From Anthoceros angustus (taxonomy: Eukaryota > Plantae > Anthocerotophyta), in assembly GCA_010909165.1 (NCBI GenBank), contig MU008160.1, positions 1,860,001 to 1,924,000 of the forward strand: DNA of 64,000 bases, given 5' to 3'. Of this stretch, positions 19,517 through 60,000 are shown piece by piece. The notes under the pieces were generated by a model. That model ran no database searches. It saw nothing but the letters and a program-made list of their open reading frames with translations, and was not told the origin of the DNA. Position 1 is the stretch's first letter. Every line of letters starts with the position of its first letter. The position numbers and the translations under genes are program-made.

Positions 19517-22399
19517 TCACTCGCCATTTCCGTTCCATGCCATCATCGGTGCTGCAGTAATGGCATCCAATGGGACGAACTTCAGGAACTCTAACCCTGA
19601 TTCTGTTTCCCAATGAGGCGACGTTGAATACTGCTTGCTTCGGATTACGGTGACTAGCCCTCTGTCTAGTTTTTCCTCCCGAGTTATCTTGAACTGGTGC
19701 TGGAACGATAGATTGTTTAGTCTCCTTACCGCCGCGGTATACATTTGCCGACCTTCCCCTCTTCGAATGGGCCACACATATGTCCAAAAATCTGCAACTT
19801 CCGTCAACAGTTTCACTTCGGTGTGGGAGTGTACGCACCAACAAGAACATGGGTCAACTCATCCAATGTGTGTGCTTCCTTGTGTTTCAAGATTTTCGAG
19901 AAACACGAAAACATCTGATCAATCTGATCATGTGTGTGCCCAACTAGGAGGAAGCCCACCTTCACTTTCTGGAAAGTCCCCATGTCCACAAGCATATTTA
20001 AGTACGCAAATAATAGCTGGTTCTTATTCTCCCGGCATGTGTTGTCCAAATGCAAGTATAAAACTTTGGGCAAGACCCCCGGTAACTATGTATAACATCT
20101 TGGATAACCGCAATAGTCAAATTCGCGTCATTCCGAAGGTTAGCATAATGCAGGAAAATCCTGGCTTTATACGTGTAGTTGTGTATCAAGCACCCCACAA
20201 TATGAACTGCAATTCGGCTTTCCTCTTCAAGGTCCTTAGGCCACCTCAAAAAATGGGGTATTTCTGTTTTCTTCTGGTCCATGCCATCAATAGATAGTAA
20301 CATATACTTATGCGGTTCAACGTAACTTTTGCTGCGGTGTTTCGCCATCTTTGCACGCTCTGCATATAGTCGCTCTCGATGCTTGTCGAGGGCGGCCTGG
20401 TACTTGCCTGCAAACAACATCGGATAAAGATATTAGCGTTTGGCCTTTTCCGTTTCTAAACACCGCCTGCCACAGCACAGAAACCCAATCCACTGTCAAT
20501 GAACTTTTCTCCCCGCTCATTGAAGACGACAGTGAGGATGGCCGCCTTCACATCAAACTGGTGAGTGATTGCTGCGCTGCCACCGGCGCCAGTAACACCA
20601 TCCAATACACTCAAGTCATCTGGTACATGTGGAACCCCAAAGCACCCCACTTACGCGTACTCCAAGATAAGGGGCTGTCGCTGGGGAGGATGTTGTACCG
20701 GCGTCTATCAGCCTAGACTCCGGTTCAATATCCTCCACCTGTGGGCACCGGCCGGCCGGCCGCCCGACCAGATACTCGGTCCCCTTTCTTGGCGAATGTT
20801 CTAGAAGAGGAATGTTTATTGCAGTTCAAGCGCACCTTGATCCTCTTTGGAGGTGGTATTTCGTATTGTGGCTTTCAAGCCAGCGCACAGAGAGCACGTT
20901 GAAAATCTGTTGGACTTCGATATCTTCACTCTGCTGAAGTGTGTTTTCCACAATTTCAGGAACCACGCGTATGTTACAACCCGCATGCCCAATATCTCAC
21001 ATTGTCGCTTGTACTGAGCCCATATCTCCAACTTCGTGTATGTGTCGGGAAGATTGAAGACCTCCACGTTCGGCAGCCTCTCTGCCATGCACAAAAAAGC
21101 ATTGTCCATCCAAGCAATGGCCCCCTGTGTGTGGGCAGTCTTCGGTATGGGGTTGGCCTTCAAACTATCCCATGGTGCATTGCGGATGACCCTGCTCTTC
21201 AGTTCCTCATACCTTTTGTGACCAATGCAGTAAACTCTTCTAAATGCCCGTAAACAACATTTGATAGCAGCAGTACCCATGACATGAGGAACCACCCTGC
21301 CCTCCGCCTCATTCCCTCTTTGGACATGCATCAGGGTTTCCAGAAATGTCTCCTGTTCTTGTCTTCCCATGCGCAGTAAACGATAACGCTGCTCCTGAAA
21401 TTTTTCCTTCGTTAACCTATGCAGACACATGTCATTGCAACATGGTTTCCGAAACTCGGCCGCGATAACTGCCCCATCACTTTTCCTCAATGGCACACCT
21501 GACATCCGACGTCCTGGGCAAACCGAATCCGCAATGCTTCTAGACTGCAACGTTTCGCTCGAAGGTTTCGCATAAAACGAACGTTGGCCAAGCTCCTCTT
21601 CACATGTCATCTGGTTGGTGTCATCCTCTTCTTCTATAGCCTGCACAAGATGGTCTCGGGCGGGCGGCAATATGGCTCCATCATCCACATTGAACAATCC
21701 GCGTCTTGCAAAAGGAGACCTGGTCGGATGCTGGACATCCGCTCCTCTTGTCATGCGTGCTTCCTTTTTGCGTGCAGAAGGGCTTCCCTCCATGGCAGCG
21801 TACAAATTAAGATTGCGAGGAGTTTGTGGAACAGATCGTGGAAGAGTGGGTGATGGTGCTGGTCGCCGTAGCCGACGACACCTGTCAATGCCTGTGTCTG
21901 CACATTCACGGGCATTCACTGTATGTCACAAACGCCCAAACAATCAAAGGTCGTTATAGGAATACAATTCCCCTAGTCCCTTACCGACAATGTGAACCCT
22001 GCTTGCTTCCAATGTCGAAAGCACATGAGTCCGGTCGTCTGTTTCAGCCGACACGCGGTTCCTTATTTCCAATGGTCTGGTTCTCTCCCTTTCCCGTCCA
22101 AACATCATGGAATGAGAATGGTCCGGCAACTGGTTTACTCGGGCATAGGCTGGTCCGGCGCCATTGTTCAACATGTCCCTCCTTCTGCATATGTCCCCTT
22201 CGCGTCGAACTCGGAGATATTGAGATTGGTCTTGGCCTTCTTCATGGAGCGACTGTAGGAAAGAAGGTTGCCGACGACTGTGAGAAACAACCAACGAAGA
22301 GAAAGCGGACTGTGCAAAGTCATCGGCACCTACTTCATCGTCGGAATTTGTATGCATGCTCTCCAACATTGCGCCAGGCTGAGGGGACTCAGAACTCAC
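19517..22399 (-). CDS. DDE/D-type transposase, DUF7869-like (Sola-like motif pattern); introns 21984-21919 and 20835-20408; -1 frameshifts near 20075 and 19815
   Basis: Cys motifs CCNDMCL and FLKLWKTHFSRVKISKSNRFSTCSLC. Acidic triad in LSIDGMDQ, LHLDNTCRENKN and FLLVGHTHDQIDQMFS. The GT-AG introns join the ORFs in phase. The true start is uncertain and may lie as far upstream as 22910. Confidence 0.8.
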
Positions 22400-23403
22400 A
22401 GGCTGGAAGCGGTCACTGTGTTTCTCCCCTGCTCACCCTTCTGTCCCCGAACGATGAGTTCCAAGCTGGGAGAGTTAATCGGGGTCGCCAACTTATGCAC
22501 ACCGGAGCGGCAAGGCAGTAATTGCAACGGCCGCCCATTGAAGGCATCCGCCGCCTCCCAGCCGCCAAATCTAGAGTCGGATATCCTGTAGCATACGGAA
22601 TACACACCGTTTGACACCGTCACTTGATTGTGCCCTAAGTACACGGATTCATGGTATAATACGGGAACACATGGCAAACCCTAATATATTCAGAGTCAGG
22701 GTATACATAATGATCCGGGATTGAACCACCGTTCACCGTTCGCGAACGCGGGTTTAAGTCCGAGCGACCTTCCGGCTGGTTGGAGCATGCTTTGGAGGTC
22801 GCCCTTACGCCCCACAACCGGCAGTGAATTCCAAAGGAACTTTCCTTCATCCTTTGCCGGCGGAGACGAGGTTCGCTCCTTTCCAACTGCACGCTATTCG
22901 ATTTCCGCATCTCTTGAATGACCTGAGGTCTGTATTCTGGTTTCTGGCAGAAGAGGCAATGGCGATGGGAAGGCGAAGCAAGAAAGGAGAGGGTGAGCGA
23001 CGGCCTGACTGTGATCCGCCAGTACAGAAACCGAAGAAGGGAAAGAGCAGAGGAAAGGCATCAGGCTCTGAAGCTGGGGAGGAGCCTAGTGCGCCCCACA
23101 ACCGAGGATTACCAGCCCTCAATTCCGCTCCTGCGGTGGGGCCGCCCCAGCAATCAGGAGGTCCGGTAATTGGTCATGGAGGCGGGCACGCACGCTCTGT
23201 GAGCCACACGTCTGGGAAGGCAAGCACGACGAGAGGAGATGGCGGAGGTGAGCAGTTCCCAGAAGAAGAGTCTCAGCCTCTATCCAATCTCCTTATAGCT
23301 ATGAGGAAACAATGCACATCAAGCGTATTTCTGGGCAGCTTCAGCCAATTGTGGTTGTAGAGAAGGATTGGATGCTGGTGCAGGAAGAAGAACCGGGAAA
23401 TGA

Positions 23404-23664
23404 TGATGAAAATCACACACTAACTCCTTAAGCAAAAGATGCTTATATACAATTGATTTAATAGAAAGTACAAAGCCTATTTATAGGCGAGGTGGTTAGG
23501 TGGTTACAACCATAAGTAGTTGTAACCGCCTAGTAGTTGTAACTACTATAACTACTAACTACCTAGATCAACTAACTAGTAACTACTTAATGCCCTAGGC
23601 ATATAATAATGTTTAAGTTAGGGTGCCCTAATGAATAGTGCCATAACCTTAATATATTTTATCA
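23404..23664 (-). repeat. 3' LTR of copia B (261 bp)
   Basis: Direct repeat of 32384-32660. It differs by ~3 substitutions and has two fewer GGTGGTTA units. Confidence 0.93.
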
Positions 23665-23931
23665 CTTCCACTCACTATGAATGTAGGGGTGAAATCTAGC
23701 TTCAAAATGAGCCTAAGTATGCTAAGTAACTCCCACTAGATCAGAAGTTATTAGCCTAAGAGAAACTGACTTAAATCTAATGTTAAGCAGTTTAAACATG
23801 AAAGAAACAAAGAGCCTAAAAGTATTTAAATAAATGTAAATAGGTCCTTTAGTAAATTAAAAAGGAAACCAAAAAGAAAATTGAGTGGATAATGCGGGGG
23901 AGGTTTTAATTTGCCCCCTGGGCGAAGCCCG

Positions 23932-24948
23932 CTATCTTTTCGCCGCGCGCTGGAAGCGGTGTGCGCTCTCGGCAGTGCGCACGCGCCCACGCTGAGGCTG
24001 GCGCTGGCTGCGCGCGCAAAGGTGTGCACACACGCAGCGAGGCCGCATACGCGGCCGCTGCACGGTGGCATGCTGCCATACAGCGTAGCCGCCAATGCCT
24101 GCTGCAGTGATCTCGAGGTCGCCGAGGATGGGCGCTCCCACTGGTCCACAAATCCTTCCACAAATTGTTGGCCCGAGTTGCCGTGTGCCTGGGTGATGTT
24201 GTCGCCGCCTCCGGGATTTTGCCAATGGTGACATGTGTGAATCAGATGACGGTGTAGATGGAATCGTACCCGTCACCGAGGTTGATGAAGAGGTTGATGC
24301 AGATGTTGATGATGTTCCCCAAAGCTGGAAGGAAACCAAGTGGGAAGAGTCGATTCCTCCCGAGGCCAAGGAGGTTGCCTTCTCTTTGGTGTGAGGACAG
24401 ATGGTGCTGTCCGCCAAGGAGCATAAGTGATGACGACCGGAGGTGGCCACAATATTTGTCCTTGAGTCTTCTCCGACAAGGATATGATGCCTTTGTTGAT
24501 GGAAACTCCGAGGGTGACATGGTTGATATCGAGGCCGAGGAGGTGGAGGCCAAGGATTCAAGCCGATCTCAAGATGTTCTTCACAACCCAACTGTGAGGG
24601 AGCCCGAGGAGATCGCACTGTAGTTAATGGCGACTTTGCGGACTCCAAATGTTCTAACGCCCTCCATAAGTCGGCATCGTAAGTCATCCGTCGCATGCAT
24701 TCTACAAATTCATAGATAGTATGTAGACCAATGGGTTGAGCCATGTGTAGATCTAGGAGCTGGATGGCTTTGGCTAGGAGAGGCTGATGACACAAAAGGA
24801 AGACCAAAAACAAAAAGAAGATGATAGAAGAAAGTAGAAAGAAAAGTAAGTGGGGATAGGGTAGATGGTCCCTATATATGTAAACCAATAGTCTTCTTAT
24901 AAATAAAAGAATATTATGTGATTGCGGTGTGGACAAGTGTGTGGGCAC
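23932..24948 (-). CDS. Extra ORF (338 aa) between pol and the 3' LTR of copia B, unknown function
   Basis: ORF track. Same strand as pol, with a hydrophobic stretch LLFFLLSSIIFFLFLVFLLC and an S/T-rich segment. A frameshifted second copy lies at ~25650-26330. Confidence 0.4.
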   Translation of the reverse strand: MPTHLSTPQSHNILLFIRRLLVYIYRDHLPYPHLLFFLLSSIIFFLFLVFLLCHQPLLAKAIQLLDLHMAQPIGLHTIYEFVECMRRMTYDADLWRALEHLESAKSPLTTVRSPRAPSQLGCEEHLEIGLNPWPPPPRPRYQPCHPRSFHQQRHHILVGEDSRTNIVATSGRHHLCSLADSTICPHTKEKATSLASGGIDSSHLVSFQLWGTSSTSASTSSSTSVTGTIPSTPSSDSHMSPLAKSRRRRQHHPGTRQLGPTICGRICGPVGAPILGDLEITAAGIGGYAVWQHATVQRPRMRPRCVCAHLCARSQRQPQRGRVRTAESAHRFQRAAKR

Positions 24949-27050
24949 AGATCATCTAAGGATTGCTATCCCCCCACTAATGGTCCAAAAAGAGGCAAAA
25001 ACAGGACATGAGATACCTGGTGCCTATCTCCCTATGGGGAATCTCTTCAAAGCTACCCACTTAATTTGCCCATGTAGTCCTTGGGATTATAAAGTCCCAG
25101 CTGAATACATATGCCATAAGAAAGGAATCAAAATGTGTAGGCTGGAAGCTGCCCCATGTGCTGAGTATGAAGGTCATACTAAACACACATATAGTAAGTA
25201 CCCTTATGTCGCTAATGAGTTATTTTTTATTTATATTTATTTACATACTAAACAAGACTCCTAAATTTTTGTGAATAGGATTTATCGGAGGAAGCTAGAG
25301 TATTATGAGGACTACTTAGAAATAGAAGAGGAACTTGAGACTTTGGATAAACTTTGTGGTTTGTAATTAACCCTTAGTTTTCTAATCTTAAGTTCCTATA
25401 GCTAACTAAGTTAGGGTGATCTAGACTTGATATCAAGGATACCTAAACTCTTCATATGCTTGCTATGTAAATCACGACCTAATGACTTGGTCAATATATC
25501 ATGGATTTTCGTGAGTTTGAATATAATTTATGTTTATTGTTTTGTTTTCTAGCATCTCTCGGATATAGTGGTATTCAATCGCTATGTGCTTTGTTCGAGT
25601 GGAAGACAGGGGTTTCTAGCTAAGGCTATAGCTCCCCACATCGAACAAAGGTGTGGGATGTTGATGATGTTCCCAAAGTGGAGGAAACCAAGTGGGGAAG
25701 AGTCGATTCCTCCCGAGGCCAAGGAGGTTGCCTTCTCTTTGGTGTGAGGACAGATGGTGCTGTCCGCCAAGGAGCATAAGTGATGACGACCGGAGGTGGC
25801 CACAATATTTGTCCTTGAGTCTTCTCCCGAGCACAAGGATATGATGCCTTTGTTGATGGAAACTCGAGGGTGACATGGTTGATATCGAGGCCAAGGAGGT
25901 GGAGGCCGAAGGGATTCAAGCTGATCTCGAAGATGTTCTTCACAACCCAATTTGTGAGGGGAGCCCGAGCTGGAGATCGCACTCTGTAGTTAATGGCGAC
26001 TTTGCGGACTCCAAATGTTCTAACGCCCTCCATAAGCTGGCATCAGGTAAGTCATCCTGTCTGCATGCATTCTACAAATTCATAGATAGTATGTAGACCA
26101 ATGGGTTGAGCCATGTGTAGATCTAGGAGCTGGATGGCTTTGGCTAGGAGAGGCTGATGACACAAAAGGAAGACCAAAAAACAAAAAGAAGATGATAGAA
26201 GAAAGTAGAAAGAAAAGTAAGTGGGGATAGGGTAGATGGTCCCTATATATGTAAACCAATAGTCTTCTTATAAATAAAAAGAATATTATGTGATTGCAGG
26301 TGTGGACAAGTGTGTGGGCACAGATCATCTAAGGATTGCTATCCCCCCACTAATGGTCCAAAAAGAGGCAAAAACAGGACATGAGATACCTGGTGCCTAT
26401 CTCCCTATGGGGAATCTCTTCAAAGCTACCCACTTAATTTGCCCAGGTAGTCCTTGGGATTATAAAGTCCCAGCTGAATACATATGCCATAAGAAAGGAA
26501 TCAAAATGTGTAGGCTGGAAGCTGCCCCATGTGCTGAGTATGAAGGTCATACTAAACACACATATAGTAAGTACCCTTATGCTGCTAATGAGTTAACAGC
26601 TTTTTATTTATATTTATTTACATACTAAACAAGACTCCTAAATTTTTGTGAATAGGATCTGTTTGGGCACTGGAGCGGGAAGCTCAGGAGTATTATGAGG
26701 ACTACTTAGAAATAGAAGAGGAACTTGAGACTTTGGATAAACTTTGTGGTTTGTAATTAACCCTTAGTTTTCTAATCTTAAGTTCCTATAGCTAGCTGAG
26801 TTAGGGTGATCTAGACTTGATATCAAGGATACCTAAACTCTTCATATGCTTGCTATGTAAATCACGACCTAATGACTTGGTCAATATATCAGCCGGATTT
26901 TCGTGAGTTTGAATATAATTTATGTTTATTGTTTTGTTTTCTAGCATCTCTCGGATATAGTGGTATTCAACTGCTATGTGCTTTGTTCTGGAGTGGAAGA
27001 CAGGGTTTCTAGCTAAGGCTATAGCTCCCTGACTGTCACTGAACAAAGGT
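24300..27050. repeat. Tandem duplication of ~1.36 kb in copia B (24300-25655 and 25657-27050)
   Basis: Near-identical blocks, including the RNase H tail; junction at ~25657. Confidence 0.88.
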
Positions 27051-30000
27051 GTGGGTACTGGTTGAGGATGATTTAGCTCACTTAATGCTAATATGCTCCA
27101 AACTATATCTTTTGAGACTGAGGTTAGGACTCTGTACTCAGACTCAGTGCTTAACAAGGCAATAGTAGGTTGTTTCTTACTTGACCAAGATATAGGAGCT
27201 CCTCCCAGTAGTAGTACATAGCCAGATACAGATTTGCGGGTGTCAGGGTCGCCGGCATAGTCAGCAGCAGCATATGCTGTTAAAATTAGCTTAGGTATGC
27301 CGGGCTTGTGCTTGTACATCAATCCAGTATTCATAGTTCCCTTGAGGTCTCAAGATACGTTTGACTGATAGCCAGTGCTCTCTTCCTGGGTTCTCTAGGA
27401 ACTGTGAGCAAGCACTTACTTCAAAAGAAATGTCTGGTCTGGTGAAGTTGCTTAAGTAGATGAGAGTGCCTACTGCATGTCGGTATGGGACTGCTGCCAT
27501 CTCATGCTTTTCTGCATCTGTTTTAGGGCTCATATCAGTTGTGAGCCTAATGCCACTTGCAAATGGTGTAGTGTCTGGCTTAGCATTTTCAAGTCCAAAC
27601 TTAGCTAAGCTTTCCTTAATATACTTAGTCTGTACTAAGCTTAAGGTTTTATGCCTCTATCCCTTATAACATTGACGCCAAGGGCATAAGTCATCTCTCC
27701 TAAATCAGTCATCTCAAAATGACTTCTTAACCATGCCTTAGTTTCAGCTAGGAGAGGAAGTGAGGATGAGGCCATAAATAAGTCGTCAACATAAAGTAAG
27801 ATATATATGATATCACTTCCTGATATCAATATGTACATACTAGCATCGGCCTTGCTTTGTCTAAAGCCCCGATTAACTAGTTTATTATGTATGACGACAT
27901 TCCATTCTTTGCCTGATTGTTTCAGGCCGTACAGGCACTTTAATAAGTTTGCATACCCAATCTTCCTTTCCCTTGACCTCATAGCCCTCAGGCTGTCTCA
28001 TATAGATTTCTTCTTGTAGACGCCCATGCAAATATGCTGTTTTGACGTCCATCATATGGAGGTGTAGGTCATGTTGTGCGGTTAAGGCTAAGATAATTCT
28101 TAGGGAGGCAAACTTGGCAACTGGTGCATAGGTGGCCCAGGGTATAAAATCTAGACCAGGGATCTGGGTAAACCCTCTTGCCACTAGTCGTGCCTTGTAT
28201 CTCTCTTTGGAACCATCACCCTTTCTTTTTATTTTGAATACCCACTTGCTAGTCACTATTTTTCTTCCCTTAGGTGGTTTCACTAATTCCCATGTAGAAT
28301 TCTTAACTAAAGAGTCGTACTCAGAATCTACAGCGACCTTCCACAAGTGTTTCTCAGGAGAGGAAAATGCTTGTTTCAAGGTTAGCTTCTTCGGGATCAA
28401 CTGTGGCTTTGTATACTTGGTGATAAGGTGAAAAGGAGAGATGGGATCATCAATGGTAGCACGGTATCCTAGGGGTGGTTCCTTCCATCCTGCAGTCACG
28501 AAATATTAGGTCTAGTTCTCGGGTTGTACCTCGAGCGAGTTGTTGTGGTTGAATATTTTCTTCAATGTCGACCACTTCATGAGCTCTTGTGTTGGGAGTC
28601 GCTCATGTTCGCCTGCCTTCGAGCTCGTCCTCATTCACAAGTCGATCATCCGCGGGAATATCAAAATCATCCCTAAGGTAATATTGATCTTCTAAATGTA
28701 GAGGTTCTTGTGTGTCGGGATCTGGTGTAGTCGGTCGACGTGGAATATGCTCTAACTCCTCCTCCTCCTCCTGCAGAGTAGGTTCAACAAGAGGAAAACT
28801 CGTGGCAGGAAGGGGATGAAAAGTAACAAATTCATCATCGTCAAAAGACGAATGCTCCATGTGTGCAGGGAGAGGAACATCAGGAGTAAGAGGGGCAGGA
28901 GCTCCCACTGAAGGGGAAAGAATATGGGACTCATGAAAAGTCACGCTCTTGGCATATATGAGTTTTTTGGTAGAAGGGTCGAATAATTTGTATCCTTTTA
29001 TGCCTTCCGTATAGCCAATGAAAGTGTACTTGGCTGCCTTAGGATCGAACTTCTTGCGTTGTACTTTTGGAATAAATACATAAGCAGGTGATCCAAAAAT
29101 CCGAAGATGTCCAATAGAAGGCTTTCTACCAGTGAATGCTTCATAAGGTGTCATACCTTGGACTGCGGAGGTCGGCAGTCGGTTGATGAGATATGTGGCT
29201 GTTAATATGGCTTCAGCCCAATAGGTCTTGGATAGAGTAGATTGGGAGAGCAAGCAACTTATCTCTTGAAGGCGTAAATTCTTATTCTACGCCATTTTCT
29301 TTGAGGAGTGTACCACGAGTTGTTGTTGATGCCTTCAGCTCGACAAAAATCAGCAAAAGTATTGGATGTAAACTTTCCACCATTGTCGGAACGCAGGGTT
29401 TTGAGTTTCTTATCCGTAAGTCTCTCGGCCCACATCATATAATCCTTAAAAAACTGGAAAGCTTGGCTTTTGTGGCGGAGGATGTATGTGAGGACAAAGC
29501 AGAGAAAATCTGTGAAGGTTAAAAAGTATCTACAACCACTAAAGGAAGGCGCAGAAATGGGACCACAAATGTCTGTATGTACCAACTCAAGGGGGGCTTT
29601 AGCCCGCTGGGGAGATGGGTTATGAAAAGGAGCTTGGTGCCGTTTGGTGACAACACAGGCTTCACACCAAGACAGGGGTTCTATCTTGGGAAGGGAGGGA
29701 GTTCTATAAAAATTTCCCTTAGACATTTGGATGAGGTTTTGGCTATTAGGGTGACCTAAACAACAATGCCAAAGCATAGTATTGGAGGAGGGGATAGAAT
29801 ATTGGGAAGCTACATTGATGAGATGTGAGGGACCCACTTGGACTCAAAGTTTATATAGTCCATCTTCTAGTGTGCCTGAGCAGATTGTATGAAACTTACT
29901 TGTAAGATAAGAAAGTAAACAATTATCCGCTTGAAGGATGATTTGCATGCTATGTTCTGAACATAAGTTGGCGGCGGACACTAGGTTTTTACACATGGAT

Positions 30001-32177
30001 GGTACATGGAGGACATGAGAAAGTGAGAGAACTTGGCCTGTAGAGCATCTGAGAACAACTGAACCAACACCAGAGATAGTGAGGTTATGATCATCACCCA
30101 ATAGGACAGTTTGATGTCCTTTGGCGGGTGAGTAAGACTCAAAAGAGTTTATGTTGTGACAGATATGTGATGTTGCTCCACTGTCTAAATACCAATTTTG
30201 GTTTGAGGGCTTGGATGATGCCAAGCAGACAGTGAGAGCTGATGGTGTTGCTGAAGATTGTTTCTTCATAGCAACATGTGCTCCAGGGGCGGCCTCCTTC
30301 CTAGGCTCGCCGTTCTTCTTTTTTCTACAGTCCTTCTCCATATAATTTGTCATTCTGCACCAATTACATATAACTCCACTCTTCTTGTTACCTTTTGCAG
30401 AAGAAGAGTTTTCTCCAATCGGAGAATATTGACCAGGATTCGGCCTAGGAGGAAAGGGTCTGCCGCGTCCTCGGCCACGTCCTCTTCCTCTACCTTGTCC
30501 TGTAAACATCACCTGCTGCTTGGTGGATCTAGGATTCTCTTGGCGACGACTGGCATCCTCCTATATGATGGCTCCAATTAATTCAGTGACACTGATGTCC
30601 AGTGTGGCGGAGCCATTTGCTTTCTTCTCTTTCTGTGCGGCTCTAAGGACAGCATTTTGTGTTGTCATAAAGGCCCTATAGGAGGGTGGTAAGGAGGCAA
30701 GGAGAGCAATAAATGCTGCTTTCTCGGAGAGCTTCTCTTCAGATGACGCTTCAAAATTATTTTTGGCGACGCGGAAAGCAGTTATATGGCGATCAATGGA
30801 ATCATTCTCCTTCATTTTCAGGGTATGGAGATGGCGGGTAGCGGTCAATAAGCTCATTCCATCTTTGGGCGTATAATTGAGCTAGCGCTCCCACATATCA
30901 CAGGAGGTGTCCGGAAACTTTCGCACCAATTACATATAACTCCACTCTTCTTGTTACCTTTTGCGAAGAAGAGTTTTCTCCATCGGAGAATATTGAGGAT
31001 TGGCCTAGGAGGAAAGGGTCTTCCGCGCCTCGGCCACGCCCTCTTCCTCTACCTTGTCCCGTAAACATCACCGCCGGTGGATCTAGGATTCTCTTGTCGA
31101 CGATCGGCATCCTCGTATGATGGCTCCAATTAATTCATGACACGATGTCCAGGATGGAGCCATTTGCTTTCTTCTCTTTCTGCGGCTCTAAGGACAGCAT
31201 TTTGTGTTGTCACAAAGGCCCTATAGGAGGGTGGTAAGGAGGCAAGGAGAGCAATAAAGCCGCTTTCTGAGAGCTTCTCTTGGATGATGCTTCAAAATTA
31301 TTTTTAGCCAGGAAAGCTTGATATGATGATCAATGGAATCATTCTCCTTCATTTTCGTGGTATGGAGATGGCGGGTAGCGGTCAATAAGCTCATTCCATC
31401 TTTGGACGCGTATAATTGAGCTAGGCGCTCCCACATATCACAGGAGGTGTCTGCTTCGGAAACTTGTCGCACCATCGCTTCGGTAAGGCCACCAACTAAA
31501 ACATCTCGAGCTCTCTGGTCCTTTGCATCCCAAACATTATGTGCATCTGAGTCCCAAGCATGCGAGGCTCGGTGTGGCGATCTCCCACAAGTCACACTTG
31601 GCACTCCTTGGGCACGACTTTGACATACGTCATACCCTCTTCCATTGAATCTATCTTTGTCTTTGAAATTATCTGCTTGAACCACTAGGGTTTTTAAGTC
31701 AGATTTTCTTTTCGCTCTCTCCTTCTCCTTAATTTCTTCCAATTCTCTTTCCCATTTGGCTTGCTCGTCTTCGAGCCATTTAGCCTTTTGGTCAGCTAAG
31801 AACTTGGTCGGTCAAGAGTTCCGCCATTGCAGGTGAGTTTATTCATGCAGATTACGCCGTCTTTGACACGCCGTCTTCTCGAATGGTGTATCGAAGAAAA
31901 GGCGTGGGCAGAAACGGCATGATTTCATATTAAAATGAGCTGCATCATCATCAGAATCTATGCGAGCATAATTTATATTACTTACTCGATCTATAGATTT
32001 AGATACGAGGGCTTCTATGAGACAATACACTTGAGCTTCAACAACATCAATTTCAGGAGCGTTAAGATCAAAATCCTCCTCCTGTGTTGCAGATGATCTG
32101 ATGTGTTGTTGTCTCTTCTTCTTCGAAGCCTTGATCTTCTGCCTATACTCTTGTCTGCTAAGATTGGGGAAATCCAT
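26801..32177 (-). pseudogene. Copia B gag-pol, multiply frameshifted
   Basis: DRFNGRGYD, knuckle CNWCRMTNYMEKDC, WYLDSGAT, WHCCLGH, LRSDNGGKF, YKARLVARGF, LYVDD and YAAADYAG...HIAVEYHYIRE. Confidence 0.9.
30357..31470. repeat. Tandem duplication of ~560 bp in copia B gag
   Basis: MSLLTATRHLHT occurs twice. The junction near 30925 has GCACCA microhomology. Confidence 0.85.
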
Positions 32178-32383
32178 GGAGGGCAGACGAGAGATTGGTG
32201 CACAACAAGTGCATCCTTAAAGTATTAAGCTGATCACCAGTTGTTTGCTGCTCAAAACAAAATTTCCACGCTGCATGATCTTCGATAGAAGAGCTAAAAT
32301 AGCAGATGCATTGGGGAGGAGAGTGCCATGAGCATAAGCAAGCAAGAGTGGTCAAGCACGAGGAGCAGTGTGCTATGATACCA

Positions 32384-32660
32384 TGATGAAAATCACACAC
32401 TAACTCCTTAAGCAAAAGATGCTTATATACAATTGATTTAATAGAAAGTACAAAGCCTATTTATAGGCGAGGTGGTTAGGTGGTTAGGTGGTTAGGTGGT
32501 TACAACCATAAGTAGTTGTAACCGCCTAGTAGTTGTAACTACTATAACTCCTAACTACCTAGATCAACTAACTAGTAACTACTTAATGCCCTAGGCATAT
32601 AATAATGTTTAAGTTAGGGTGCCCTAATGAATAGTGCCCTAACCCTAATATATTTTATCA
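32384..32660 (-). repeat. 5' LTR of copia B (277 bp)
   Basis: Followed on the minus strand by the Met-type PBS. Confidence 0.93.
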
Positions 32661-39111: not shown

Positions 39112-39259
39112 ACGCCTTGGGCGGTCTAACTTCTCCAAAAATCCTTCTGTCTGTGATTTTCTCCTCGAATTCTTCTAAGTGTTCTCAGTGCATCCTCCAG
39201 GCCTCCGTCCTCCGTCCTTGAGTCCTCGACCAACTCAAATGAGCTAAACACTCCCCTCT

Positions 39260-49086: not shown

Positions 49087-52000
49087 TGTGGTGGGAGGTT
49101 CCGGGACCCCGGAACCTCTCAGCAGCACACTTATCCCACTTTGTCGGTTCGTGCAGTGGGTTTCGTTCCACGAAGGAGTGGGGAGCCCTTCCTTCGGATG
49201 GAGGTGCGCCCTCCTGGCCCGGCCTCTCGACTCTCGGCTCCCGTCGGGCGCTAGCGCCCCTCCTACGGCCACACTTATCCCAATCGGTTCGACAAGAGGG
49301 TTTCGTTCCACGAAGGAGTGGGGAGCCCTTCCCCGCAATGGAGGTGCGCCCTCCACGACCTCTCGACTCTCACGACTCTGCAGCGCGCCCGACGACTAAC
49401 GCCTCCTACCGCCGCCGGTGACCCACCCTCGGTAAGTCACACTACCCTCGCGCGATGACTCGTCGGTAGCGGACCTCGTCATGAGCACCAATCTGCGTGG
49501 CGACCTTGGGACCCCAAATCACCGTCTGATGGGCAATCCTCCCACCAGCAGTTCCTACACTCCCTAAGACCCTTCTCATGACAAATTTGGGGCCGCCCCT
49601 CAAGCTCTTGTCACTTGAAATTTCACCTTCCCTCTCTTTTCTAGGTTTCTTCCTCCTCTCTTCTCTTTTGTCTTTTCTCTTTTCTCTCTTGCTCCTTCCT
49701 TCTCCTCTCTTGCTCCCTATCCTCTCTAGCTCCTCTCTCGTCCTCTCTCGCTCTCCTCTCTCGCTCTCTCTCGCTCTCTCTCTCTTTTCTTTCTCTTTTC
49801 TCTCTTTTCTCCTCTCTTCTCCTCTCTTCTCTAATCTACCTCTTCCACTCTTCCTAGCTAACTTCTCGTACAGCCCTCCAGCCTCCCAGCGCCTCGGATC
49901 ATAGGGCATTGCCCTCACGGACCTAGGCGGACATTTGGCTGGCGTCACGCGTCTTTGGATTTTGCTAGGGGTCTTCCTTACCGATCTGTCGCGTCGCAAC
50001 CACAATGCGCTCCTCACGCTCGAGCACTGCCTGCTACCTCCGGAAAGAAAGGTTTGGGCCCGCCCTCACCACAGTCACCGCACCTCAAGACCCTACGGAC
50101 ACCATGCACCCTCACACGGTGCACATGCGCTTGTGTAGCAAGACAAGCACCTGCAGTCGGAGAGCAAGGCATGACATTTTATTATGGGAGCTCCTCCCCT
50201 CTTATAGGAGCTCCCCAAACCCTAGCATTAATTAAGTCGGTGGGGTAGGTGGGGTTGCTTACGGTTTTAAGTAGGTGGCCTCTTAAAGGTTCTTAACCTA
50301 CCTCCTAACAATCCCACTAACCCCTAGGGGTCTTAATGACCCATTCACTCCCCTACCAACTATCGCCTACTTCTTCTTGGGTGTTGGCATGGCCACCGTC
50401 TTCCTCCTCTTGGCTTGGGACTCCTGTCCGGATCTCTTCACTCGTCGTCGACGGGAACCTCCACACTGTCTCGGCGATCTTGGCTGTTGGTGGGCACCCC
50501 TCTTGCAGGCGCTCTTGTAGAGCACGGCCTCTCTATCCATCTGTCTGCCGCGCAATTACCTCCAGGCGGTTGGGTGCGTGCTCACATCTGCGGACACCCC
50601 ACCAACTCTACGGCAAATCTCCTCTTCTTCTATTAGCTCCTCCCACATTGAGCCTTCTGCATCCATTTCACTCTCCAAGTCCTGAATCTCCGAAGCAGAG
50701 GGTCGCAATTCCTCCAAAATCTCCCTGTCGTCATCGTGGGGACCCAACAACTTCCTTGTAAACAAGAACGCATCTCCTTGGCAAACTTGTTGACCCTGGC
50801 ATGTAAGTGGACCTGCATCTCCTGGCCCTTCAAGCAAATCTCATCAAATTCCTCAGGCCACTCTCCACGAGGCTATCTTACCATAGCATCCCTCTCAAGC
50901 GTCACCTCACTCAAGCAGGCGTAAGTGACATTCTCGGCATCTCTCTTCCATGCCTCCGGATCCCTTGCCGCCATGCATAATCGGCTGGGCGTTGCTTCTG
51001 ACGACCGACATCGATGCATCATTTTCCTCCGGTGGGCTACCTCTTCCTTCCACCGTTGGTCGGCCTCCGTTGCTTGCTTTGAGCTCCTCACGCTCCTTGC
51101 TCCATGTGGCTGTCCTCCCCTCCGGCTCCTTGAGCTTGGCCTCGATTTCATTCTTGGCTTGGGGCTCCCTCAGGATCTCTTCACTCGTCGTGTGACGGGA
51201 ACCTCCACACTGTCTCGGCGATCTTGGTTGAGGCGGTGGCCACCCCTCTTGCGGCGCTCTTGTAGAGGCAGGCCTCTCTATAGCCATCATCTTGCTGCAA
51301 TTACCTCCAGGCGGTTGGGTGTTGGTGCAGCTCACATCTGTGCCAGACACCCCACCAACTCTCGGCTGGAAATCTCTTCCTCTTCCATTGGCTCCTCCCA
51401 CATTGAGCCTTACATCCATTTCACTCTCAAGTCCAATCTCGAGGCGGGGTGCAATTCTTCAAAATCTCCACACGTCATCGTGGGGACCCAACAACTTCCT
51501 TGTCAACAAGGAGCATCTCCTTGGAACTTGTTGACCCTAGCATGTAAGTGGACTGCATCTCCGGCCCTTCAAACAAATCTCATCAAATTCCTCGGGCCAC
51601 TCTCCGAGGCTATCTTACCATAGCATCCCTCTCAAGCGTCACCTCACTCAAGCAGGCTGTGAGTGACATTCTCGGCATCTCTCTTCCATGCCTCCGGTAT
51701 CCTTGTCGCCATGCATAATCGGCTGGGCGTTGCTTCTGACGACCGATCGATGCATCATTTTCCTCCGGTGGGCTACCTCTTCCACCGTTGGTATCGGCCT
51801 CCGTTGCTTTGAGCTCCTCACGCTCCTTGCTCCATGTGGCTGTCCTCCCCTCCAGGCTCCTTGAGCTTGGCCTCCGATTCTTCATTCTTGGCTTGGCGGC
51901 CTCGGCCTCCCAGGGCAGTCTTGATCGTCCCTATTCTCTTTCTTCTCGGCTGAAGTGAGAAATCTTCTTCCACTCCTTCCACATCAGACGGTCTCCTCAA

Positions 52001-55000
52001 TCTTTGATTGAGGTAGCCACTTCCTTCATTCGCTCCCTACTTTCTTGTCTCGACCTTTGTTCTTCAATCTTCTTTGAGCCCCAACCTTCTCTCCAGTCAA
52101 CTAGGCGCCCTTTGCAGCCATCTCCTTGATAGCCTTGCTATCCTTCTCCCCACCGACAGAGGGTCGCTTGGCCCCGACGGCCTCTCACCTCCAACTCCTC
52201 TACTTCTGTAAGGCTTGCTTCACTAATGGAGTGTCAATTAGGCGTGCGGATGGTGACATCCTTCAAAGCCTTTGTCTTCTCATTCCCCTCCACAGGTCGA
52301 CTCACGCCTTTCTCTTGGTGGCGGTCTCTCCACTCGACGCCGATGTTGGGTGGAACTCACTGACTCGGTCATCTCACAGGGTGGGTTACATCCACCACCA
52401 CTGCTCCATGGGGTTGCCTCCTGTACACATGGTGGCAGCCACCTCTTCCTCTTGTGCCTTGTCTCCCCACAGGCGGGCACTTCTCTTCCTTCCACCGTTG
52501 GTCGACCTCCGTTGCTTGCTTAGGAGCTCCTCACGCTCCTTGCTCCATGTGGCTGTCCTCCCTCCAGCTCCTTGAGCTTGGCCTCGATTCTTCATTCTTG
52601 GCTTGCCTCGGCCTCCCAGGGCAGTCTTGATCGTCCCTATTCTCTTCTTCTCGGCTGAAGAATGAAATTTCTTGCTCCTTCCACATCGGAGTCTCCTCAA
52701 TTTTACGGTTGAGGTAGCCACTTCCTTCATTCGCTCCCTACTTTCTTGTCTCGACCTTTGTTCTTCAATCTTGAGCCCCAACCTTCTCTCGGGTCAACTA
52801 GGCCCTTTGCCAGCATCTCTCCTTGATAGCCTTGCTATCCTTCTCCCCACACAGTAGGGCAATCGCTTGCTTGGGCTCTCACCTCCTCCTCTTTCAAATG
52901 GAGTGTGTGAGATGGTGGATCCTTCAAAGCCTTTGTCTTCTCATTCCCCTCACAGGGTCGACTACACGCCTTTCTCTTGGTGGCGGTCTCTCCACTCTGG
53001 CCATCGATGTTGGGTGGAACTCCGTGACTCGGTCATCTCACAGGGTGGGTTACATCCACCACCACTGCTCCATGGGGTTGCCTCCTGTACACATGGTGGC
53101 CGCCACCTCTTCCTCTTGTGCCCTCCCCACAGACAGGCACTTCTCCTTCCTTGGCGTCGGGTGGTCTCATCATCCAAGATCACCACGAGGTGAAGCACTT
53201 GCTCCACCTTGGGTTCCTCCTCTGCCTTCTTCACCTTCTTAGGAGAGGGACCCTGTCATCCCTCGGAGGACCACTTCAAATTTGGTAAGACTCCTCCGGC
53301 TCTTCTTGGTCGATAACCCATGTGCCCCCACAAGCACAAGGTAAGTACTCAAATGGTGCCTCGCCCCTCATTGTCCACAATGTTTGGCCTCGTGACTTGT
53401 CTCGGTGATGCTCATAGGCCCTTGACATGGTTGTCCCCGGTCGGTGAGCTCCTTGCTTGACTTCCACATGAAATGAAAGAATGCCTTCTTGAAGTAGGTG
53501 GTTGACGGTCAAAAACTATCCTTGTAAAAGCTTCCACTTGAGGTCGGCAATCTTATCATCCTCCATTCGCGTCTTGGCGTCTATCCCTCCGATGAGCATC
53601 TTTGAGAGCTTCCTCGGGAAGGTCGACCACCTCTTTCCATCTTCATTCCTCTCGTGAGCCACACCATCACTCTCGGTTTCGGCCTCCCATACACCTTACG
53701 AATGTCTTTGGGCGGTCCATCCCTTGGATCATCACGTTCCTCTCCGTCAGTCTCTGTTTCTCCCTCCGTCGATTCACATGTAGCAAGACTCAACCAATTC
53801 CACATTAGAATAGGCCCAATGCCTATCGTAAACCTTTGGGCGCACATTTTTTGACCTATCGAAAATCCCATAAGTCTGGAGGAGACTTGCGCTGGCTACA
53901 AAATCCTGGCCCCTCCTTCTCGGATCCTTCTCGACTTCTCCTTCCTTGGCCGACGGGTGGTCTCATCATCCAATCACCACCGAGGTGAAGCACTCCTTGC
54001 TCCACCTTGGGTTCCTCCGCCTTCTTCACCTTCTTAGGGAGAGGGACCCTGCATCTCCCCTCGAGGGACCACTTCAAATGGCTGGTAAGATTCCTCCAGC
54101 TCTTCTTCCACAAGAACCCATGTGCCCCCACAAGCACAAGGTAAGTACTCAAATGGCTGCCCCCTCATTATCCACAATGTTTGGCCTCGTTGTCTCTTGA
54201 TGCTCATAGGCCAAGATGGTTGTCCCCAGTCGAGCTCCTTGCACTTCCACATGAAATGAAAGAATGCACTCAAGTAGTGGTTCACGACGGTCAGCCCCAA
54301 AACTATCCTTGTAAAAAGCTTCCACTTGAGGTCGCAATCTTATCTCCCTCCACCCCATTCCGCGTCTTGGCGTCTATCCCTCCGATGAGCATGCCGAGAG
54401 CTTCCTCGTGAAGGTCGCCCACCAACGCTCTTTCCATCTTCATTCCTTCCGTGGAGCCACCCATCACTCTCGGTTCGGCCTCCCATACACCTTTCGAATG
54501 TCCGGATACCCATCCTTCGGACCGTCCGCACGCTCCTCTCCAGTCCTCTGCTTTCTCCCTCCGTCGTGAGCTGTAGCAAGACTCAACCAATTCCACATTA
54601 GAATAGGCCCAATGCCTATCGTGAAACCCATCGAGCTGCACATTTTCGTCCACCGAAAATCCCATAAGTCTCGGAGGAGACTTGTCAAACACAAAAATCT
54701 CGGCCCCTCCTTCCGATCCCTCGGCTTCTCCTTCACACTCTTCTTCTTCTCCTTGTGTGGGCTCGCTCCCTCCTTCTTCTGGGCCTTGCGCACTCCTCCG
54801 GGCATTTGCGTCTTCATCTTCCACGCCTTACGGGCGGTCGATCTTCTCAAAATCCTTCATCATCGGTGATTTTCTCCAAAAATCCTTCCTGCTTTATCGA
54901 TTTTCTCCTCAATTCTTCTAAGTGTTCTCAGTGTCTCCGACAATGCCTCCGTCCTCCGTCCTTGATCCTCGACCAACTCAAATGAGCTAAACACTCCCCT

Positions 55001-56373
55001 CTACTTACATATATAGGGTGAGGAGGATTTTCCACACCCAAAGGCCAAGGACGAAAATTTCCCTGTCCAAAGGCCAAGGACCTTTTCCTTGAGCGTTAGA
55101 ATTCCTCAACCACGAAGGCCAAGGAAGAAATTTCTCCATTGTTCACCAATTGCAAAGCCCAAGGAAGAAAAATCAGCGAGACATGCAAAAATTGACCCGC
55201 CACGTCATGACCCTAACCCGCCTTGTCGTCTTCCGCTTCGAAACCCTCAGAAGGCCAAGGCGCTGATTTCCTCCTCCGGCGCCGATGATTCTCTATATAT
55301 GCTTGCATCGCTCCCTCCTTAGTCTTTATTGCCTCTTCTTCCTCTCAGCCGCATCGCTCGCGCACCACCTCCAACCTCGCGCTCTGAATTTGCGCGCAAC
55401 TCGCGAGGCCTCTCGCGCGTCTTCATCTTCCACCTGACAGATCTTCTCCAAAAATCCTTCCCTGCTGATTTTCTCCTTGAATTCTTCTAAGTGTTCTCAC
55501 CCTCCGACAGCCGCCCGCCGCCCGCCTCCGGCCCTCCTCGACCAACTCAAATGAGCTAAACACTCCCCTCTACTTACATATAGGGTGAGGAGGGATTTTC
55601 CACACCCAAAGGCCAAGGACGAAATTTCCCGTCCAAAGGCCAAGGACCTTTTCCCTTCGACGTTAGAAATTCCTCAACCACCGAAGGCCAAGGAAGAAAT
55701 TCTCCGCTGTTCACCAATTCCCAAAGTCCAAGGAAGAAAAATCAGCAGACATGCAAAAGGGTCAGCCCGCCGCCACGTCGCAGCCCTAACCCGCCGCCGG
55801 TTCGTCTTCCGCCTGTCCGAAACCCTCCGAAGGCCAAGGACAGCGCCCGATTTCCTCCTCCGAGCGCCAAGGATGATTTCTCTATATATGCTTGCATGCG
55901 CTCCCTCCTTGGTGCTGTTGCGCCTCTTCTTCCTCTCGCTACTGCCCGCTCCACGCCACCTCCAACCGCCACTGTCGGAATTTGCGCTGACCACACGAGG
56001 GGCCTCTCTCGCTGCGTCTTCCGGTGGGAAGAACCTTACTCTGCATTTGTCTGGCAGGCGGAGTGACTGCGCCGCCACTAGGCCGGCACCAACCCTCCTT
56101 TTGCGGGTTCGGCCTTCCGAACCTCCCTCGTTAAACTTTCCGGACCTCGTCAGGACCTCAAAATCCTTTCGAGTTGGACCCATTTTGAATCCGTTTTCCT
56201 CCTTTACATCCGTCCAGGGGTGCAAATCTGTCCTTGCTTCTCACTCACTCTTGTTGTCTTCCGTCGATGTCTGTTGGTGAGAAAAAGAAAAAGAAAAATA
56301 AAACCTAACTAATATGAACAAAACTAGAGGCATCCGCCCCTCTTCTAGTGGACCCAAAATTTGGCGTTCCACA
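49087..56373 (-). repeat. 5' LTR of the gypsy element (7287 bp as assembled, internally duplicated)
   Basis: Followed on the minus strand by TTTT and the PBS. Confidence 0.88.
50367..54824 (-). pseudogene. Second copy of the LTR-embedded coding region, in the 5' LTR
   Basis: Same peptides (WAYSNVELVESCY, EMQVHLHARVNKFAKEMRS, AMPTPKKK*). Confidence 0.65.
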
Positions 56374-57218
56374 AGATTGCAGACGAGAGCAAACGGTAAG
56401 GTTTCGGATTTTAGCGACAATGCATTGTGTCATCTTCCTCTTAGCAATGTTGACGCATAACCCTTTTTTATGTAATGTACATTACATTTTGCGGCTGCCC
56501 AAGTAGGAAGAGCTTTCATGTTACGTATGCGGAGATTCACGATCATCTTTGAGCACAGGAGGTTATGTAAGACAGTCGCTCACCACCAAGATGAGGATGA
56601 CCCACCGGCACGAAGGGAGTGAATTGGGTCGAAGATGAGGATGATGGGCGATTCGGATGTTCTTGGTCATTCGGATGATGATTTGGAAGAGTCTATACAG
56701 GGCGAAGGGATGCGAGATATCTTTTCGACTACGATATGCAGGCGATCCATGGAGGTCGGTATGATCCTCATCGAGGAGGCGCCGGGCGCCTCCAAAGGTG
56801 TCGGGACATGGTGACACCTAATCCGTGGTTTGTCCAGTTCCCAAATGTTGGGTTGGGCGCCGGCCGGCGCCCTCAGCCTCGGCGGGCCCAAGCGGTGAGC
56901 TGCCCCACGGCTGTGAGCGGCGATGAAGGGGCGGCGCCGGCCGGCGGCGCCTCCAGTGAGCGTTGTCTTGGGAAGCGGGCGATCCGGATCAGGTGGGGTC
57001 GCGGTGAGGAGATGAACAGAGGCAGGGAAAAGGAGAAGAGGCGGAAAGGCGCACGGCGATGGGCGGTGTCTTGACATCCGACGGTTCATGTCGACGGACG
57101 AGGAGACTAGAGACGCTATCCGGATGAGGACCGGCCGCATCGGGGGAATGCCCTCAAGAAGGTTGCGAGATAGTTCTTGTGAAGTTGGAGAATTTCGTCT
57201 GCGTCGCACCTAACGGCT

Positions 57219-57580
57219 CAAATAAGAAGGGTGGACGAAGCATGGACAAACTATTTGGCACGGGTGATATCGAAAGGAAGAATTGAAGAAGGAGTTTTAC
57301 CCCTGCTGTGCATGATTGATCCGACGGAATGCTCTGAGCTCGCCACTCTAGACTGGAAGAAATTCAGGGCAAAGACATATGTCATGGGTGTCCTGGGTTG
57401 TAACCACATATATGCAGCAATGAAACATTTGGCAGACATCTCACCTGGGAAAAAACGCTTCCAATATGTGGAGGCACATGTGTACTGTGGCCTCACTGTG
57501 CAGGAGATGAGAGTACTCGCCACCGATCACAACATTATGTCGGACAAGCGGAGGAAGATGTCTTTTATAGAGCAAGTCGA
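57219..57580 (+). CDS. ParB/Srx-like domain of the cargo gene
   Basis: QIRRVDEAWTNYLARVISKG...LPLLCMID...MGVLGCNHIYAAMKHL...VEAHVYCGLTVQEMRVLATDHN...RRKMSFIEQ follows the ParB pattern R..L..SI..G..P..V....IxGxxRxxA....V.....A..EN..R..L..IE. Recognised by eye only. Confidence 0.62.
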
Positions 57581-58569
57581 CCTCGGGGATGAACTATTGA
57601 TTTGGCGAAGGGGTTCAAATGGCGATGACTTGGAAATTCAACTTATACAAGGTTAGGACTTATTGAGGATGATGAGGCCCGTAACGACGATACAAACAAA
57701 ACAAGGTGGACAACAGACTCATATCTTATGCATAGCGAAGCGAGGGCAAAGTGTGGGAGAATAGACAAGATCTTCTCAAAGTGGGAAGTCTGTGACCTGC
57801 CAGAGGCGGAAGAGGCACGCGTGGGCACAAACAAGAAGGAAAAGGAAGCGAAGGTGAAGAGTCGAAGAAAGTGGATGCAACGTATGTAAAGCCGAAGACA
57901 TGTTGGCGAAGCCACGAAGTCGTTCAAGGTATTCCAGTGGTGATTGTGGGCAGCATTCTCTCATTTCCGAGAAGGTTTTGGCGTGGCCTAATAGATTTGA
58001 AAGGGATGGATGACGACATTACCTTGCGAAGAAATTCCACGTCATCCAAGTTGCTATGGCCAAACACTTGGGATGCTCATCGTTCGAGGAAGTCCGCTAG
58101 AATATCCACATCACTCACGACAAAATGCTTGCCGGTTTGCACTCAATTCGCGGAAAGGTATGTGTCGGTTGTGTTTTGTGTTTTCCTCCGTATGCAAATG
58201 TTTGAGAATGGGAATGGTAGGGTGGGGAGGGCGTGGCCGGCCTCCCCCACCTCCTTCCCACAAATGAGAATGGCGGTCGCTCCTAACCCCTTGGGTTGTG
58301 GAGTGGGGGTGGCGGGCCGGCCACGCTGAGCATGGGACGTCGTTCTAATGCCTTTTTGTTGGCGGCGAAGGATGTGGACAACCTCACAAAACTACGATTT
58401 CCAACATTTATATTGAGTGAACAATTGGAAGGGCTTGAAAATGAGCAAAGAGATTTGGCCGACAAAGATCAGCCGGGCTTTTGTATTCAATGTCCCCAAA
58501 ACATATAACAGTTCGATCAAGTCGAGAAAGCGAAATGTGGATATGCGGGGTTATTTGAGAGGACGAAAC

Positions 58570-59168
58570 TATGCCATTGATCATGGATGTCCCCGAGGTT
58601 TTGATATAGGATCTATGGACAAAAGGATGGACATCACAAGTATGAATCTGATGTTCCGAGCTTCGAGAAAACTACATGCGAAGAGTTCCGGATTATCGTT
58701 ATGCATGGTGTGGAGGAAGCTCATATAGTGAGAGAGTCTATGAGGAAGTGGTGCAGGAAAGGAGGCATGGTTTCATTTGTATGGGACAAGACAAACATGA
58801 GCAATGACAAAGGAGGGTTTGAAACCGTGGAGTACGTGACTGTAGGGTGGTGTGTGAAGGACGGGTGTTCCAAGGATAGGGCCACGATGATGCCGAATGC
58901 CATGGATGGAATGTTTAACAATGGGAGGTCGGTCATAGCATATGACACTGTGGTGAAAAAGCAGGTTTACCTCTCTAACGACAAGCTGGTGGTATGCCCG
59001 TACCAAAGGCCTCTGGGCCTTATGATGAAGCTCATAAAGACATTTTCGAAGGAAGGGGACTGGGTGCTTGATGCATGCTCTGGAAGCGGAGCGACCATTT
59101 TGGCAGCCTTGCTTTGTGGCGTCCATGTCGCCATAGGCGGACTTGAGGTGTGCGAGCTATATTCATAG
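58570..59168 (+). CDS. Beta-class amino-methyltransferase domain (N6_N4_Mtase-like)
   Basis: FVWDKTN (IIWxK motif), ETVEYVTVGW, then CPYQRPLGLMMKLIKTFSKEGDWVLDACSGSGATILAALLCG. The latter matches HPxQKPxxLxxxLIxxxSxxGDxVLDPFxGSGTTxxAAxxxG. A motif-IV-like LIMDVP lies upstream in an overlapping frame (DVP at 58586-58594). Confidence 0.85.
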
Positions 59169-60000
59169 CGCATCCATGGGCACGAGGTCTACAGGGCCAA
59201 AGAAGAGCTCACTTCGAGCCTCATCGGAGGCCCCTCCCAGTTTTGGGCGAAGGAAGTATGCATCAGTGAGAAGGATGGTTTAAAGGCTCAGGTGGTTCCC
59301 TTCACTGCGAAACGAATGATGAGAACAACTGGAGAGCTTTTAGACGTGGGACAGCAGACTTTGAATGTTGTTTGGGAGCACTCTAGTGGGGGAGCGGAGT
59401 CCAAGGGTGACGGAGACGAGTGCGACAGAGCCTAGAAAACGACAGTTTCGACGAGGAGGAGATGGAGCAGGCGCAATGTCGTTGGATTCGATGTCGGCTC
59501 GAGCGGATGAGTCGCGGCCACCGTCACATTTCTCCGATTTAGAGTAGGAATGTTGAAACTATAGGTCCTACTTAGGATGCATCAAGTTTTCTTGTTGTAC
59601 AATCAGCCAGCCAGTGGTTCGGGACATTGAAGTCCATGGCTTTGGATATTGAAATGGACCTGACAGGGGGCCGGCCGGCCGGCGCCCTAACAGAACAATG
59701 AAATGAAAACTATGTTCATGGCATGTCGTGTGCCACTGTATGAAGTTCTGAATTTCCCCGCTGTTTTCAATATAATGTCGAGGCGGTTTCGAGCAGGTGC
59801 ATATGCAAGAGGTCCGACCCCAAACGAAGAGGGTTTGTATATTCACCCCCTTGCAAAATTAGATGCATGCCATGCATCTACTGACAGGCTGAAAACTGAA
59901 AAGACAGCAGATACCAAAAGACATACAACTAAGCAACAAAACGGCGAAATACATGAGGAACCGCGTTAAACCAAGCCCGTGACCGCACAGAGGAGCAACG

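Follow-up and report, generated by a model that had tools for sequence, protein, structure and literature searches.

A probable dead Sola1-type transposon with an accessory methyltransferase gene in the genome of Anthoceros angustus

Can a plant DNA transposon carry, next to its transposase, a gene for an enzyme that modifies DNA? This question is raised by a stretch of 64,000 nucleotides from Anthoceros angustus (GenBank assembly GCA_010909165.1, contig MU008160.1, positions 1,860,001 to 1,924,000), called the window below and numbered from its first letter, in which a minus-strand gene of the DUF7869 type lies head-to-head with a plus-strand gene for a bacterial-type DNA methyltransferase. 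A preliminary description had proposed that the two form one mobile element that may mark itself epigenetically. In our reading, which we hold to be very likely, the locus is a dead and truncated cut-and-paste transposon of the Sola1 type with an accessory methyltransferase gene, in which two long terminal repeat (LTR) retrotransposons were inserted later. The same reading implies that intact relatives combine a divergent DDD transposase (DUF7869) with a single protein in which a probable ParB/sulfiredoxin (Srx)-like domain precedes a beta-class amino-methyltransferase domain. To our knowledge, transposons with a DNA-modifying enzyme of their own are rare and none has been functionally tested.

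The transposase was correctly recognized in the preliminary description, since Pfam detects DUF7869 (PF25273) twice on the minus strand. The second half of the catalytic core, running from LDNTCRENKN to VGHTHDQIDQMFSCF, is found at 19813-20073 (E 1.9e-33) and the first half, with DGMDQKKT, at 19998-20420 (E 5.2e-6), the two being connected solely via a frameshift near 20040-20073 (tblastn matches in two frames). The transposase gene consists of two coding blocks separated by a probable intron at 20421-20815, and the same split occurs at 2120-2377 of L002, an 8915-bp metagenome contig with an intact gene pair. The N-terminal region, at 20816-21919, is 22% identical over 260 amino acids to the N-terminal open reading frame (ORF) of L002 (E 1e-11). 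A segment 3' of the core is an ORF at 19517-19816, in a frame that differs from that of 19813-20073, and the ORF pieces of the gene in general sit in differing frames. The second half of the core is 62% identical to the L002 transposase; homology stops near 19831, and the C-terminal 300 or so amino acids of the L002 protein are absent from the window.

The kind of transposase can be derived from an intact relative. An alignment of 39 DUF7869 sequences shows D127 and D169 in every member, with D44 and E166 almost as strictly conserved. The AlphaFold model of the relative's core (predicted local distance difference test score, pLDDT, 92.8) has an RNase H-like order of elements, beta1-3/alpha/beta4/alpha/beta5/alpha, with D44, D127 and D169 at the canonical RNase H places on beta1, beta4 and the following helix. 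Foldseek searches with this model returned the cores of retroviral integrase, IstA, MuA, TnsB and Sleeping Beauty, with E-values of only about 1e-3, yet with matches uniformly from one superfamily. The window copy itself retains DGMDQ, LDN and HTHDQID, the DDD triad having been examined on the intact relative. The motifs MDGxxQS, DNTxxENKN and VGHTHxxIDQxFSCF are common to DUF7869 transposases and that of the Ectocarpus element Sola1-1_Ec32, which has MDGANQS, and VDNTVAENKN...VGHTHIQIDQIFSCF where the window core has LDNTCRENKN...VGHTHDQIDQMFSCF; this likeness was judged by eye on the motifs and not from a scored search. On the basis of the RNase H-like fold with its canonical residues and of these common motifs, DUF7869 is to be regarded as the Sola1 transposase core. 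Sola elements were reportedly defined by Bao and co-workers in 2009 by DDD transposases and 4-bp target-site duplications (TSDs). Proteins with DUF7869 occur in multiple copies in Chara and a prasinophyte and, among animals, in bivalves, cnidarians, echinoderms and amphioxus. In one low-coverage DNA run, the transposase core is represented by many contigs that are short and diverged, as would be obtained from a repeat family; in the sequencing-run listing no run with the methyltransferase region was found, and one DNA run holds the transposase core only.

The plus-strand gene has two conserved blocks that lie in one frame. An N-terminal (probably ParB/Srx-like) domain block at 57231-57656 matches proteins from Ginkgo, Chara and a metagenome (tblastn, E 1e-7 to 1e-14), and an ORF at 58701-59168 represents the C-terminal half of a beta-class DNA methyltransferase domain, with W-x-K, PYQ[KR]P and an SGSG motif for S-adenosylmethionine (AdoMet). 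The beta-class amino-methyltransferase signature claimed earlier is confirmed, as the ORF scores 37.8 bits against PF01555 (N6_N4_Mtase; cut-off 26.7; E 2.6e-9) and contains the quoted motifs (VWDK... and PYQRPLGLMMKLIKTFSKEGDWVLDACSGSG); it is 37% identical to the Ginkgo protein P0005. The sequence between the two blocks changes frame and contains three or more in-frame stops, with stops near 58506, 58578 and 58602. The middle region at 57657-58700, colinear in length with its relatives, is broken by frameshifts and stops, and a premature stop closes the methyltransferase ORF at 59166. Motif IV at 58470-58509 is degenerate: one frame gives FVFNVPKTYN and the other CIQCPQNI followed by a stop, thus N-V-P-K or Q-C-P-Q, so that there is no intact (D/N/S)-P-P-(Y/F/W/H). 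Because of the frameshifts, the in-frame stops and the degenerate motif IV, the methyltransferase gene and the transposase gene of the window are pseudogenes, and neither can work here. The suggestion that this copy is an epigenetic writer has to be abandoned, since a dead copy writes no mark.

The same gene had been described as intron-containing. Both supposed introns are nested LTR elements with TSDs. The first, at 23404-32660 on the minus strand, is a copia-type retrotransposon (RVT_2, Pol SH3, Pol_BBD) with TG..CA ends and the TSD AATGA/AATGA, of which the LTRs at 23403-23664 and 32383-32660 are 93% identical in a self-comparison. The second, at 32938-56373, is a 23.4-kb LTR-like element, again with TG..CA ends, and with the TSD AGATT/AGATT; its terminal direct repeats of about 7 kb (32983-40029 and 49266-56373) are some 85% identical in the self-comparison, and no recognisable coding domain was present in the ORFs tested. 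The LTRs or direct repeats, the TG..CA ends and the TSDs identify both as later insertions and not as introns. The stretches proposed for excision, 23404-32665 and 32938-56378, were nevertheless exact. The terminal repeats of the second element are built of tandem units of about 1 kb, and the element shows a strong C-rich strand skew.

Excision of both insertions, which are separated by a 272-bp piece of the original element (32666-32937), leaves a remnant of about 7.3 kb. In it, the N-terminus of the transposase and the N-domain block are 2.6 kb apart, as compared to 2.9 kb in the intact L002, and the left part of the divergent intergenic or 5' region lies at 21920-23403. An ORF of 183 amino acids runs across both insertion joints once the sequence is de-nested and is without a detectable homologue. 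Neither this ORF nor the one at 22824-23360, the two candidates for upstream exons, has detectable similarity to orf272 of L002 or to Chara N-termini, which makes one spliced gene with a start near 22.9 kb no more than a conjecture.

The relationship between the two genes can be judged from other organisms. When the methyltransferase fragment was used in an exhaustive phmmer search, no close relative came up, the best match being 41% identical. Three long proteins contain both conserved blocks: Gb_37443 of Ginkgo (P0005), CBR_g41648 of Chara braunii (P0011) and P0014, a JGI metagenome protein. The latter is encoded on L002, where a minus-strand DUF7869 transposase in two ORFs accompanies a plus-strand protein of 789 amino acids with N-domain and methyltransferase domain; here the reading frame is open in the methyltransferase gene as well as in both coding blocks of the transposase. 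Close to each contig end there is an inverted repeat of 28 nucleotides or more, by eye extendable to about 47; the left one touches the contig edge, so that a TSD cannot be recognized. In Chara, the methyltransferase has 15 or more paralogues and DUF7869 has many, and a divergent DUF7869 transposase is located upstream of the methyltransferase gene at three of the six Chara loci considered (L004, L005 and L008). Altogether, the divergent orientation with similar spacing recurs at four or more loci from two other organisms. These copies (L002 and, for example, CBR_g2668/CBR_g2669 of Chara) resemble the window in having the same two genes, divergent and similarly spaced, with identities to the window of 41-62% in the transposase core and of about 30% in the methyltransferase blocks; they are not annotated as transposons in their sources. 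Two Logan contigs (L006 and L007) have the methyltransferase domain alone in common. The annotated CBR_g41648 (1825 amino acids) spans 29.5 kb of the Chara contig BFEA01000570.1 (L001) and holds two complete units of N-domain plus methyltransferase, at 10115-12168 and 36058-38094; the annotation has probably merged two copies of the transposon into one gene.

Selection was evaluated by comparing two intact metagenome lineages, whose proteins are 76% identical for the methyltransferase gene and 72% for the transposase. Synonymous sites are saturated, with proportions of differing sites (pS) of 0.75-0.9, and the corresponding nonsynonymous value (pN) amounts to 0.15 in the methyltransferase gene, 0.09 in the N-domain of that gene and 0.17 in the transposase. 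Overall, the resulting pN/pS comes to about 0.19, and for the ParB-like domain it is near 0.10. Judged from these values, both genes are under strong purifying selection between the two lineages, and the methyltransferase gene is thus, as far as sequence comparison can tell, a working accessory gene of the element and a genuine transposon accessory rather than a chance neighbour. The proposal that transposase and methyltransferase gene belong to one mobile element is upheld by this selection and by the recurrence of the pair in L002 and in the Chara loci L004, L005 and L008.

Several observations weigh against the locus being a transposon of the proposed kind. Blastn comparison of 1-20000 with 59100-64000 for inverted repeats did not reveal terminal inverted repeats (TIRs) or a TSD of a DNA transposon, and on its left side the element adjoins a copia reverse-transcriptase fragment (18128-19013, minus strand), situated at the truncated transposase end. 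At L001, L003 and L009, the other half of the six Chara loci, no transposase is present within 10 kb, so that the expected linkage elsewhere was found in L002 and half of the Chara loci and was lacking in the remainder. Motif IV of the family is without one of the two prolines of the canonical (D/N/S)PP(Y/F). Finally, no significant match of the N-domain to ParB was obtained in Pfam, NCBIfam, a phmmer or a profile search of the PDB, or with hhalign, which was run against one ParB_N sequence.

The ParB-like stretch of the preliminary description is therefore retained in part: there is a conserved domain at 57231-57656, and the name ParB has been given to it without a significant match. The family alignment of this domain has the pattern ...Y.I.vLGGGHSREAR...vYVGLT..EAR..gH.HN, which in our view resembles the GxxR..A box known from ParB as well as the sulfiredoxin motif GGCHR. 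Among protein-language-model neighbours, taken for two domains (P0014 and Ginkgo) that are mutually 28% identical, 42-43 of 100 are ParB_N and 24-25 of 100 are DUF6551. Pfam gave a single weak DUF6551 match (E 0.004), in one of ten N-domain members. An AlphaFold model based on ten sequences had a pLDDT of 54, and its Foldseek matches were noise. The language-model neighbours and the motif resemblance make it probable that the domain is ParB-like.

For the methyltransferase domain, the intact relatives are more informative. They have motif IV followed by W-x-KPN, PYQKP and (F/C)SGSGT, which is the beta-class order, and their motif IV is D-[FI]-P-[YHC]-G-Y-N in the family alignment, seen as DFPY, DFPC and DIPH. 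It is conceivable, but in our view rather unlikely, that the accessory protein has no DNA methyltransferase activity and instead serves as a DNA-binding or transposition co-factor, with the methyltransferase fold as a binding module. Such a role would agree with the non-canonical and variable motif IV and with the scores to the nearest NCBIfam models, which are curated CcrM-type adenine methyltransferases and whose cut-offs lie far above these scores; a precedent is provided by the inactive transposon-borne methyltransferase domains of DIRS1 (PMC4738411). It is less easily reconciled with the near invariance of the AdoMet motif (F/C)SGSGT, of PYQKP and of W-x-KPN, and with the purifying selection on the methyltransferase domain (pN 0.15 against a saturated pS).

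If the enzyme is active, the base that it modifies may be predicted from its relatives. In a profile search of the PDB, the adenine enzymes DpnA, CcrM, MboIIA and RsrI came first (E 1e-6 to 1e-4), and structures of N4-cytosine methyltransferases followed with weaker matches (E 4e-4). Motif IV of MpDN4MT1 from Marchantia is TSPPY, and the family has D where this protein has S. From the D-versus-S rule for the target base (PMC4738411) and the TSPPY of MpDN4MT1, N6-adenine is a more likely target than N4-cytosine. The preliminary description had pointed to N4-cytosine and to DN4MT1, a connection that finds no support in the comparison of D-[FI]-P-[YHC]-G with TSPPY or in the nearest solved and curated relatives, which are adenine enzymes. 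That the element carries an N4-cytosine writer akin to Marchantia DN4MT1 and is a reservoir for domesticated host enzymes is accordingly improbable: PF01555 spans enzymes of both types and N4-cytosine structures are among the weaker profile matches, but motif IV has D and not S, and the top solved and curated matches are all adenine enzymes. The notion of a host methyltransferase gene that merely lies beside an unrelated transposase is largely refuted and very improbable, as the missing element ends in the window and the Chara copies without a nearby transposase are opposed by the constant orientation and similar spacing at the linked loci, the multiple copies of the gene in Chara and the decay of both window genes in the manner of transposon remnants.

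The Sola1-type transposon with an accessory methyltransferase gene is not without precedent, although the preliminary description knew of no account of the architecture. Sola1-1_Ec32 of Ectocarpus, classified by its best blastp match to Sola1-1_PPa of Repbase, has a gene opposite to the transposase strand that encodes a protein with ParB-like DNA-binding and N4C/N6A DNA methyltransferase domains, and its authors propose that this accessory protein binds and modifies its own element (Genome Biol 2025, PMC12477816). The window element resembles it in the signature motifs of the transposase and in the opposite-strand accessory gene of the same type, the accessory proteins being likened through the published description alone. 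Sola1-1_Ec32 itself is a 21.5-kb element of a brown alga with long TIRs, a 4-bp TSD and an accessory protein of 1104 amino acids, and unlike it the window copy is dead. Related accessory genes are PAG2 and PAG3 of red-algal Plavaka elements (Bostrychia), which encode a PF01555 methylase and a ParB-like protein (Petroll et al., bioRxiv 2025.02.11.637652). They share with the window element the inverted-repeat arrays beside the ParB gene, but belong to another transposase superfamily and have separate proteins, in which SET is fused to the methylase and a 2-oxoglutarate (2OG) oxygenase to the ParB domain. The kind of element is thus already published, and what is added here is a new dead copy and a new host lineage.

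Other proteins are comparable in part. MpDN4MT1a/b of Marchantia and the bdelloid N4CMT are, like the present family, eukaryotic proteins of bacterial beta-class amino-methyltransferase origin, but they are host genes and have TSPPY (N4C) instead of D-x-P-aromatic; this comparison was made by description, and no transposase link or ParB domain has been reported for them. Phage and plasmid fusions of ParB and methyltransferase (ParB_N + N6_N4_Mtase) have the same two domain types; in one bacterial protein with both domains, P0111, the ParB domain is C-terminal, and no significant sequence match to the N-domain of the window family was obtained.

In an intact Sola1-type element of this family, the transposase would excise and reinsert the element. 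The accessory protein would bind the DNA of the element via its ParB-like domain, possibly at palindrome arrays that are specific for each family and located upstream of its own gene, and would then methylate adenine at N6, or less likely cytosine at N4, which could mark or protect the element. In the window, three GC-rich palindromes with the core GGCGCCGGCCGGCGCC occur about 78 bp apart at 56775-56951, upstream of the ParB-like block; this core is unique to that region in the window, with two matches against 0.01 expected. Chara locus L008 has three copies of another palindrome (AGTTATAGGCCTATAACT) at 9217-9341, about 0.9 kb upstream of its gene, L005 has a 50-nucleotide palindrome at 12968-13017, and in L002 an inverted-repeat array is found directly upstream of the gene at 5661-5941. 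As a speculation, such lineage-specific arrays may be candidate parS-like binding sites. It is a tentative and rather doubtful extension of this idea that the partnership of Sola1 with a ParB-like/methyltransferase protein is ancient and has been under selection across charophytes and land plants, perhaps also among brown algae, as a means of self-marking. The array upstream of the accessory gene, particular to each element lineage, would then act as a parS-like site that recruits the ParB-like domain, and the enzyme would place N6-methyladenine (6mA) on the DNA of its own element.

The pairing extends to streptophytes, being represented by Chara, by an uncultured relative, by the Anthoceros genome and, as regards the methyltransferase protein, by a homologue in Ginkgo. 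The window copy, being dead, adds nothing functional, whereas L002 and the Chara copies are intact candidates for asking whether a transposon writes a mark other than 5-methylcytosine (5mC) on itself.

As to the surroundings of the remnant, the window copy is probably truncated, and a search to the right of the methyltransferase gene for the remaining half of the copia element that flanks it on the left found none. Near 19440-19450, contigs of the sequencing run X1 switch partner, as would be expected if a repeat ended there. A 60-bp tandem repeat (60161-60367), present in 3.3 copies, follows some 1 kb 3' of the methyltransferase remnant and could represent subterminal repeats of the element or be unrelated. 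The entire window is a pile of transposons without an obvious host gene. Further nested LTR retrotransposons occupy positions 1-16000, among them a plus-strand polyprotein (6730-11136), direct repeats of 200 bp at 6329 and 11158, and inverted arms of 315 bp at 1946 and 6014.

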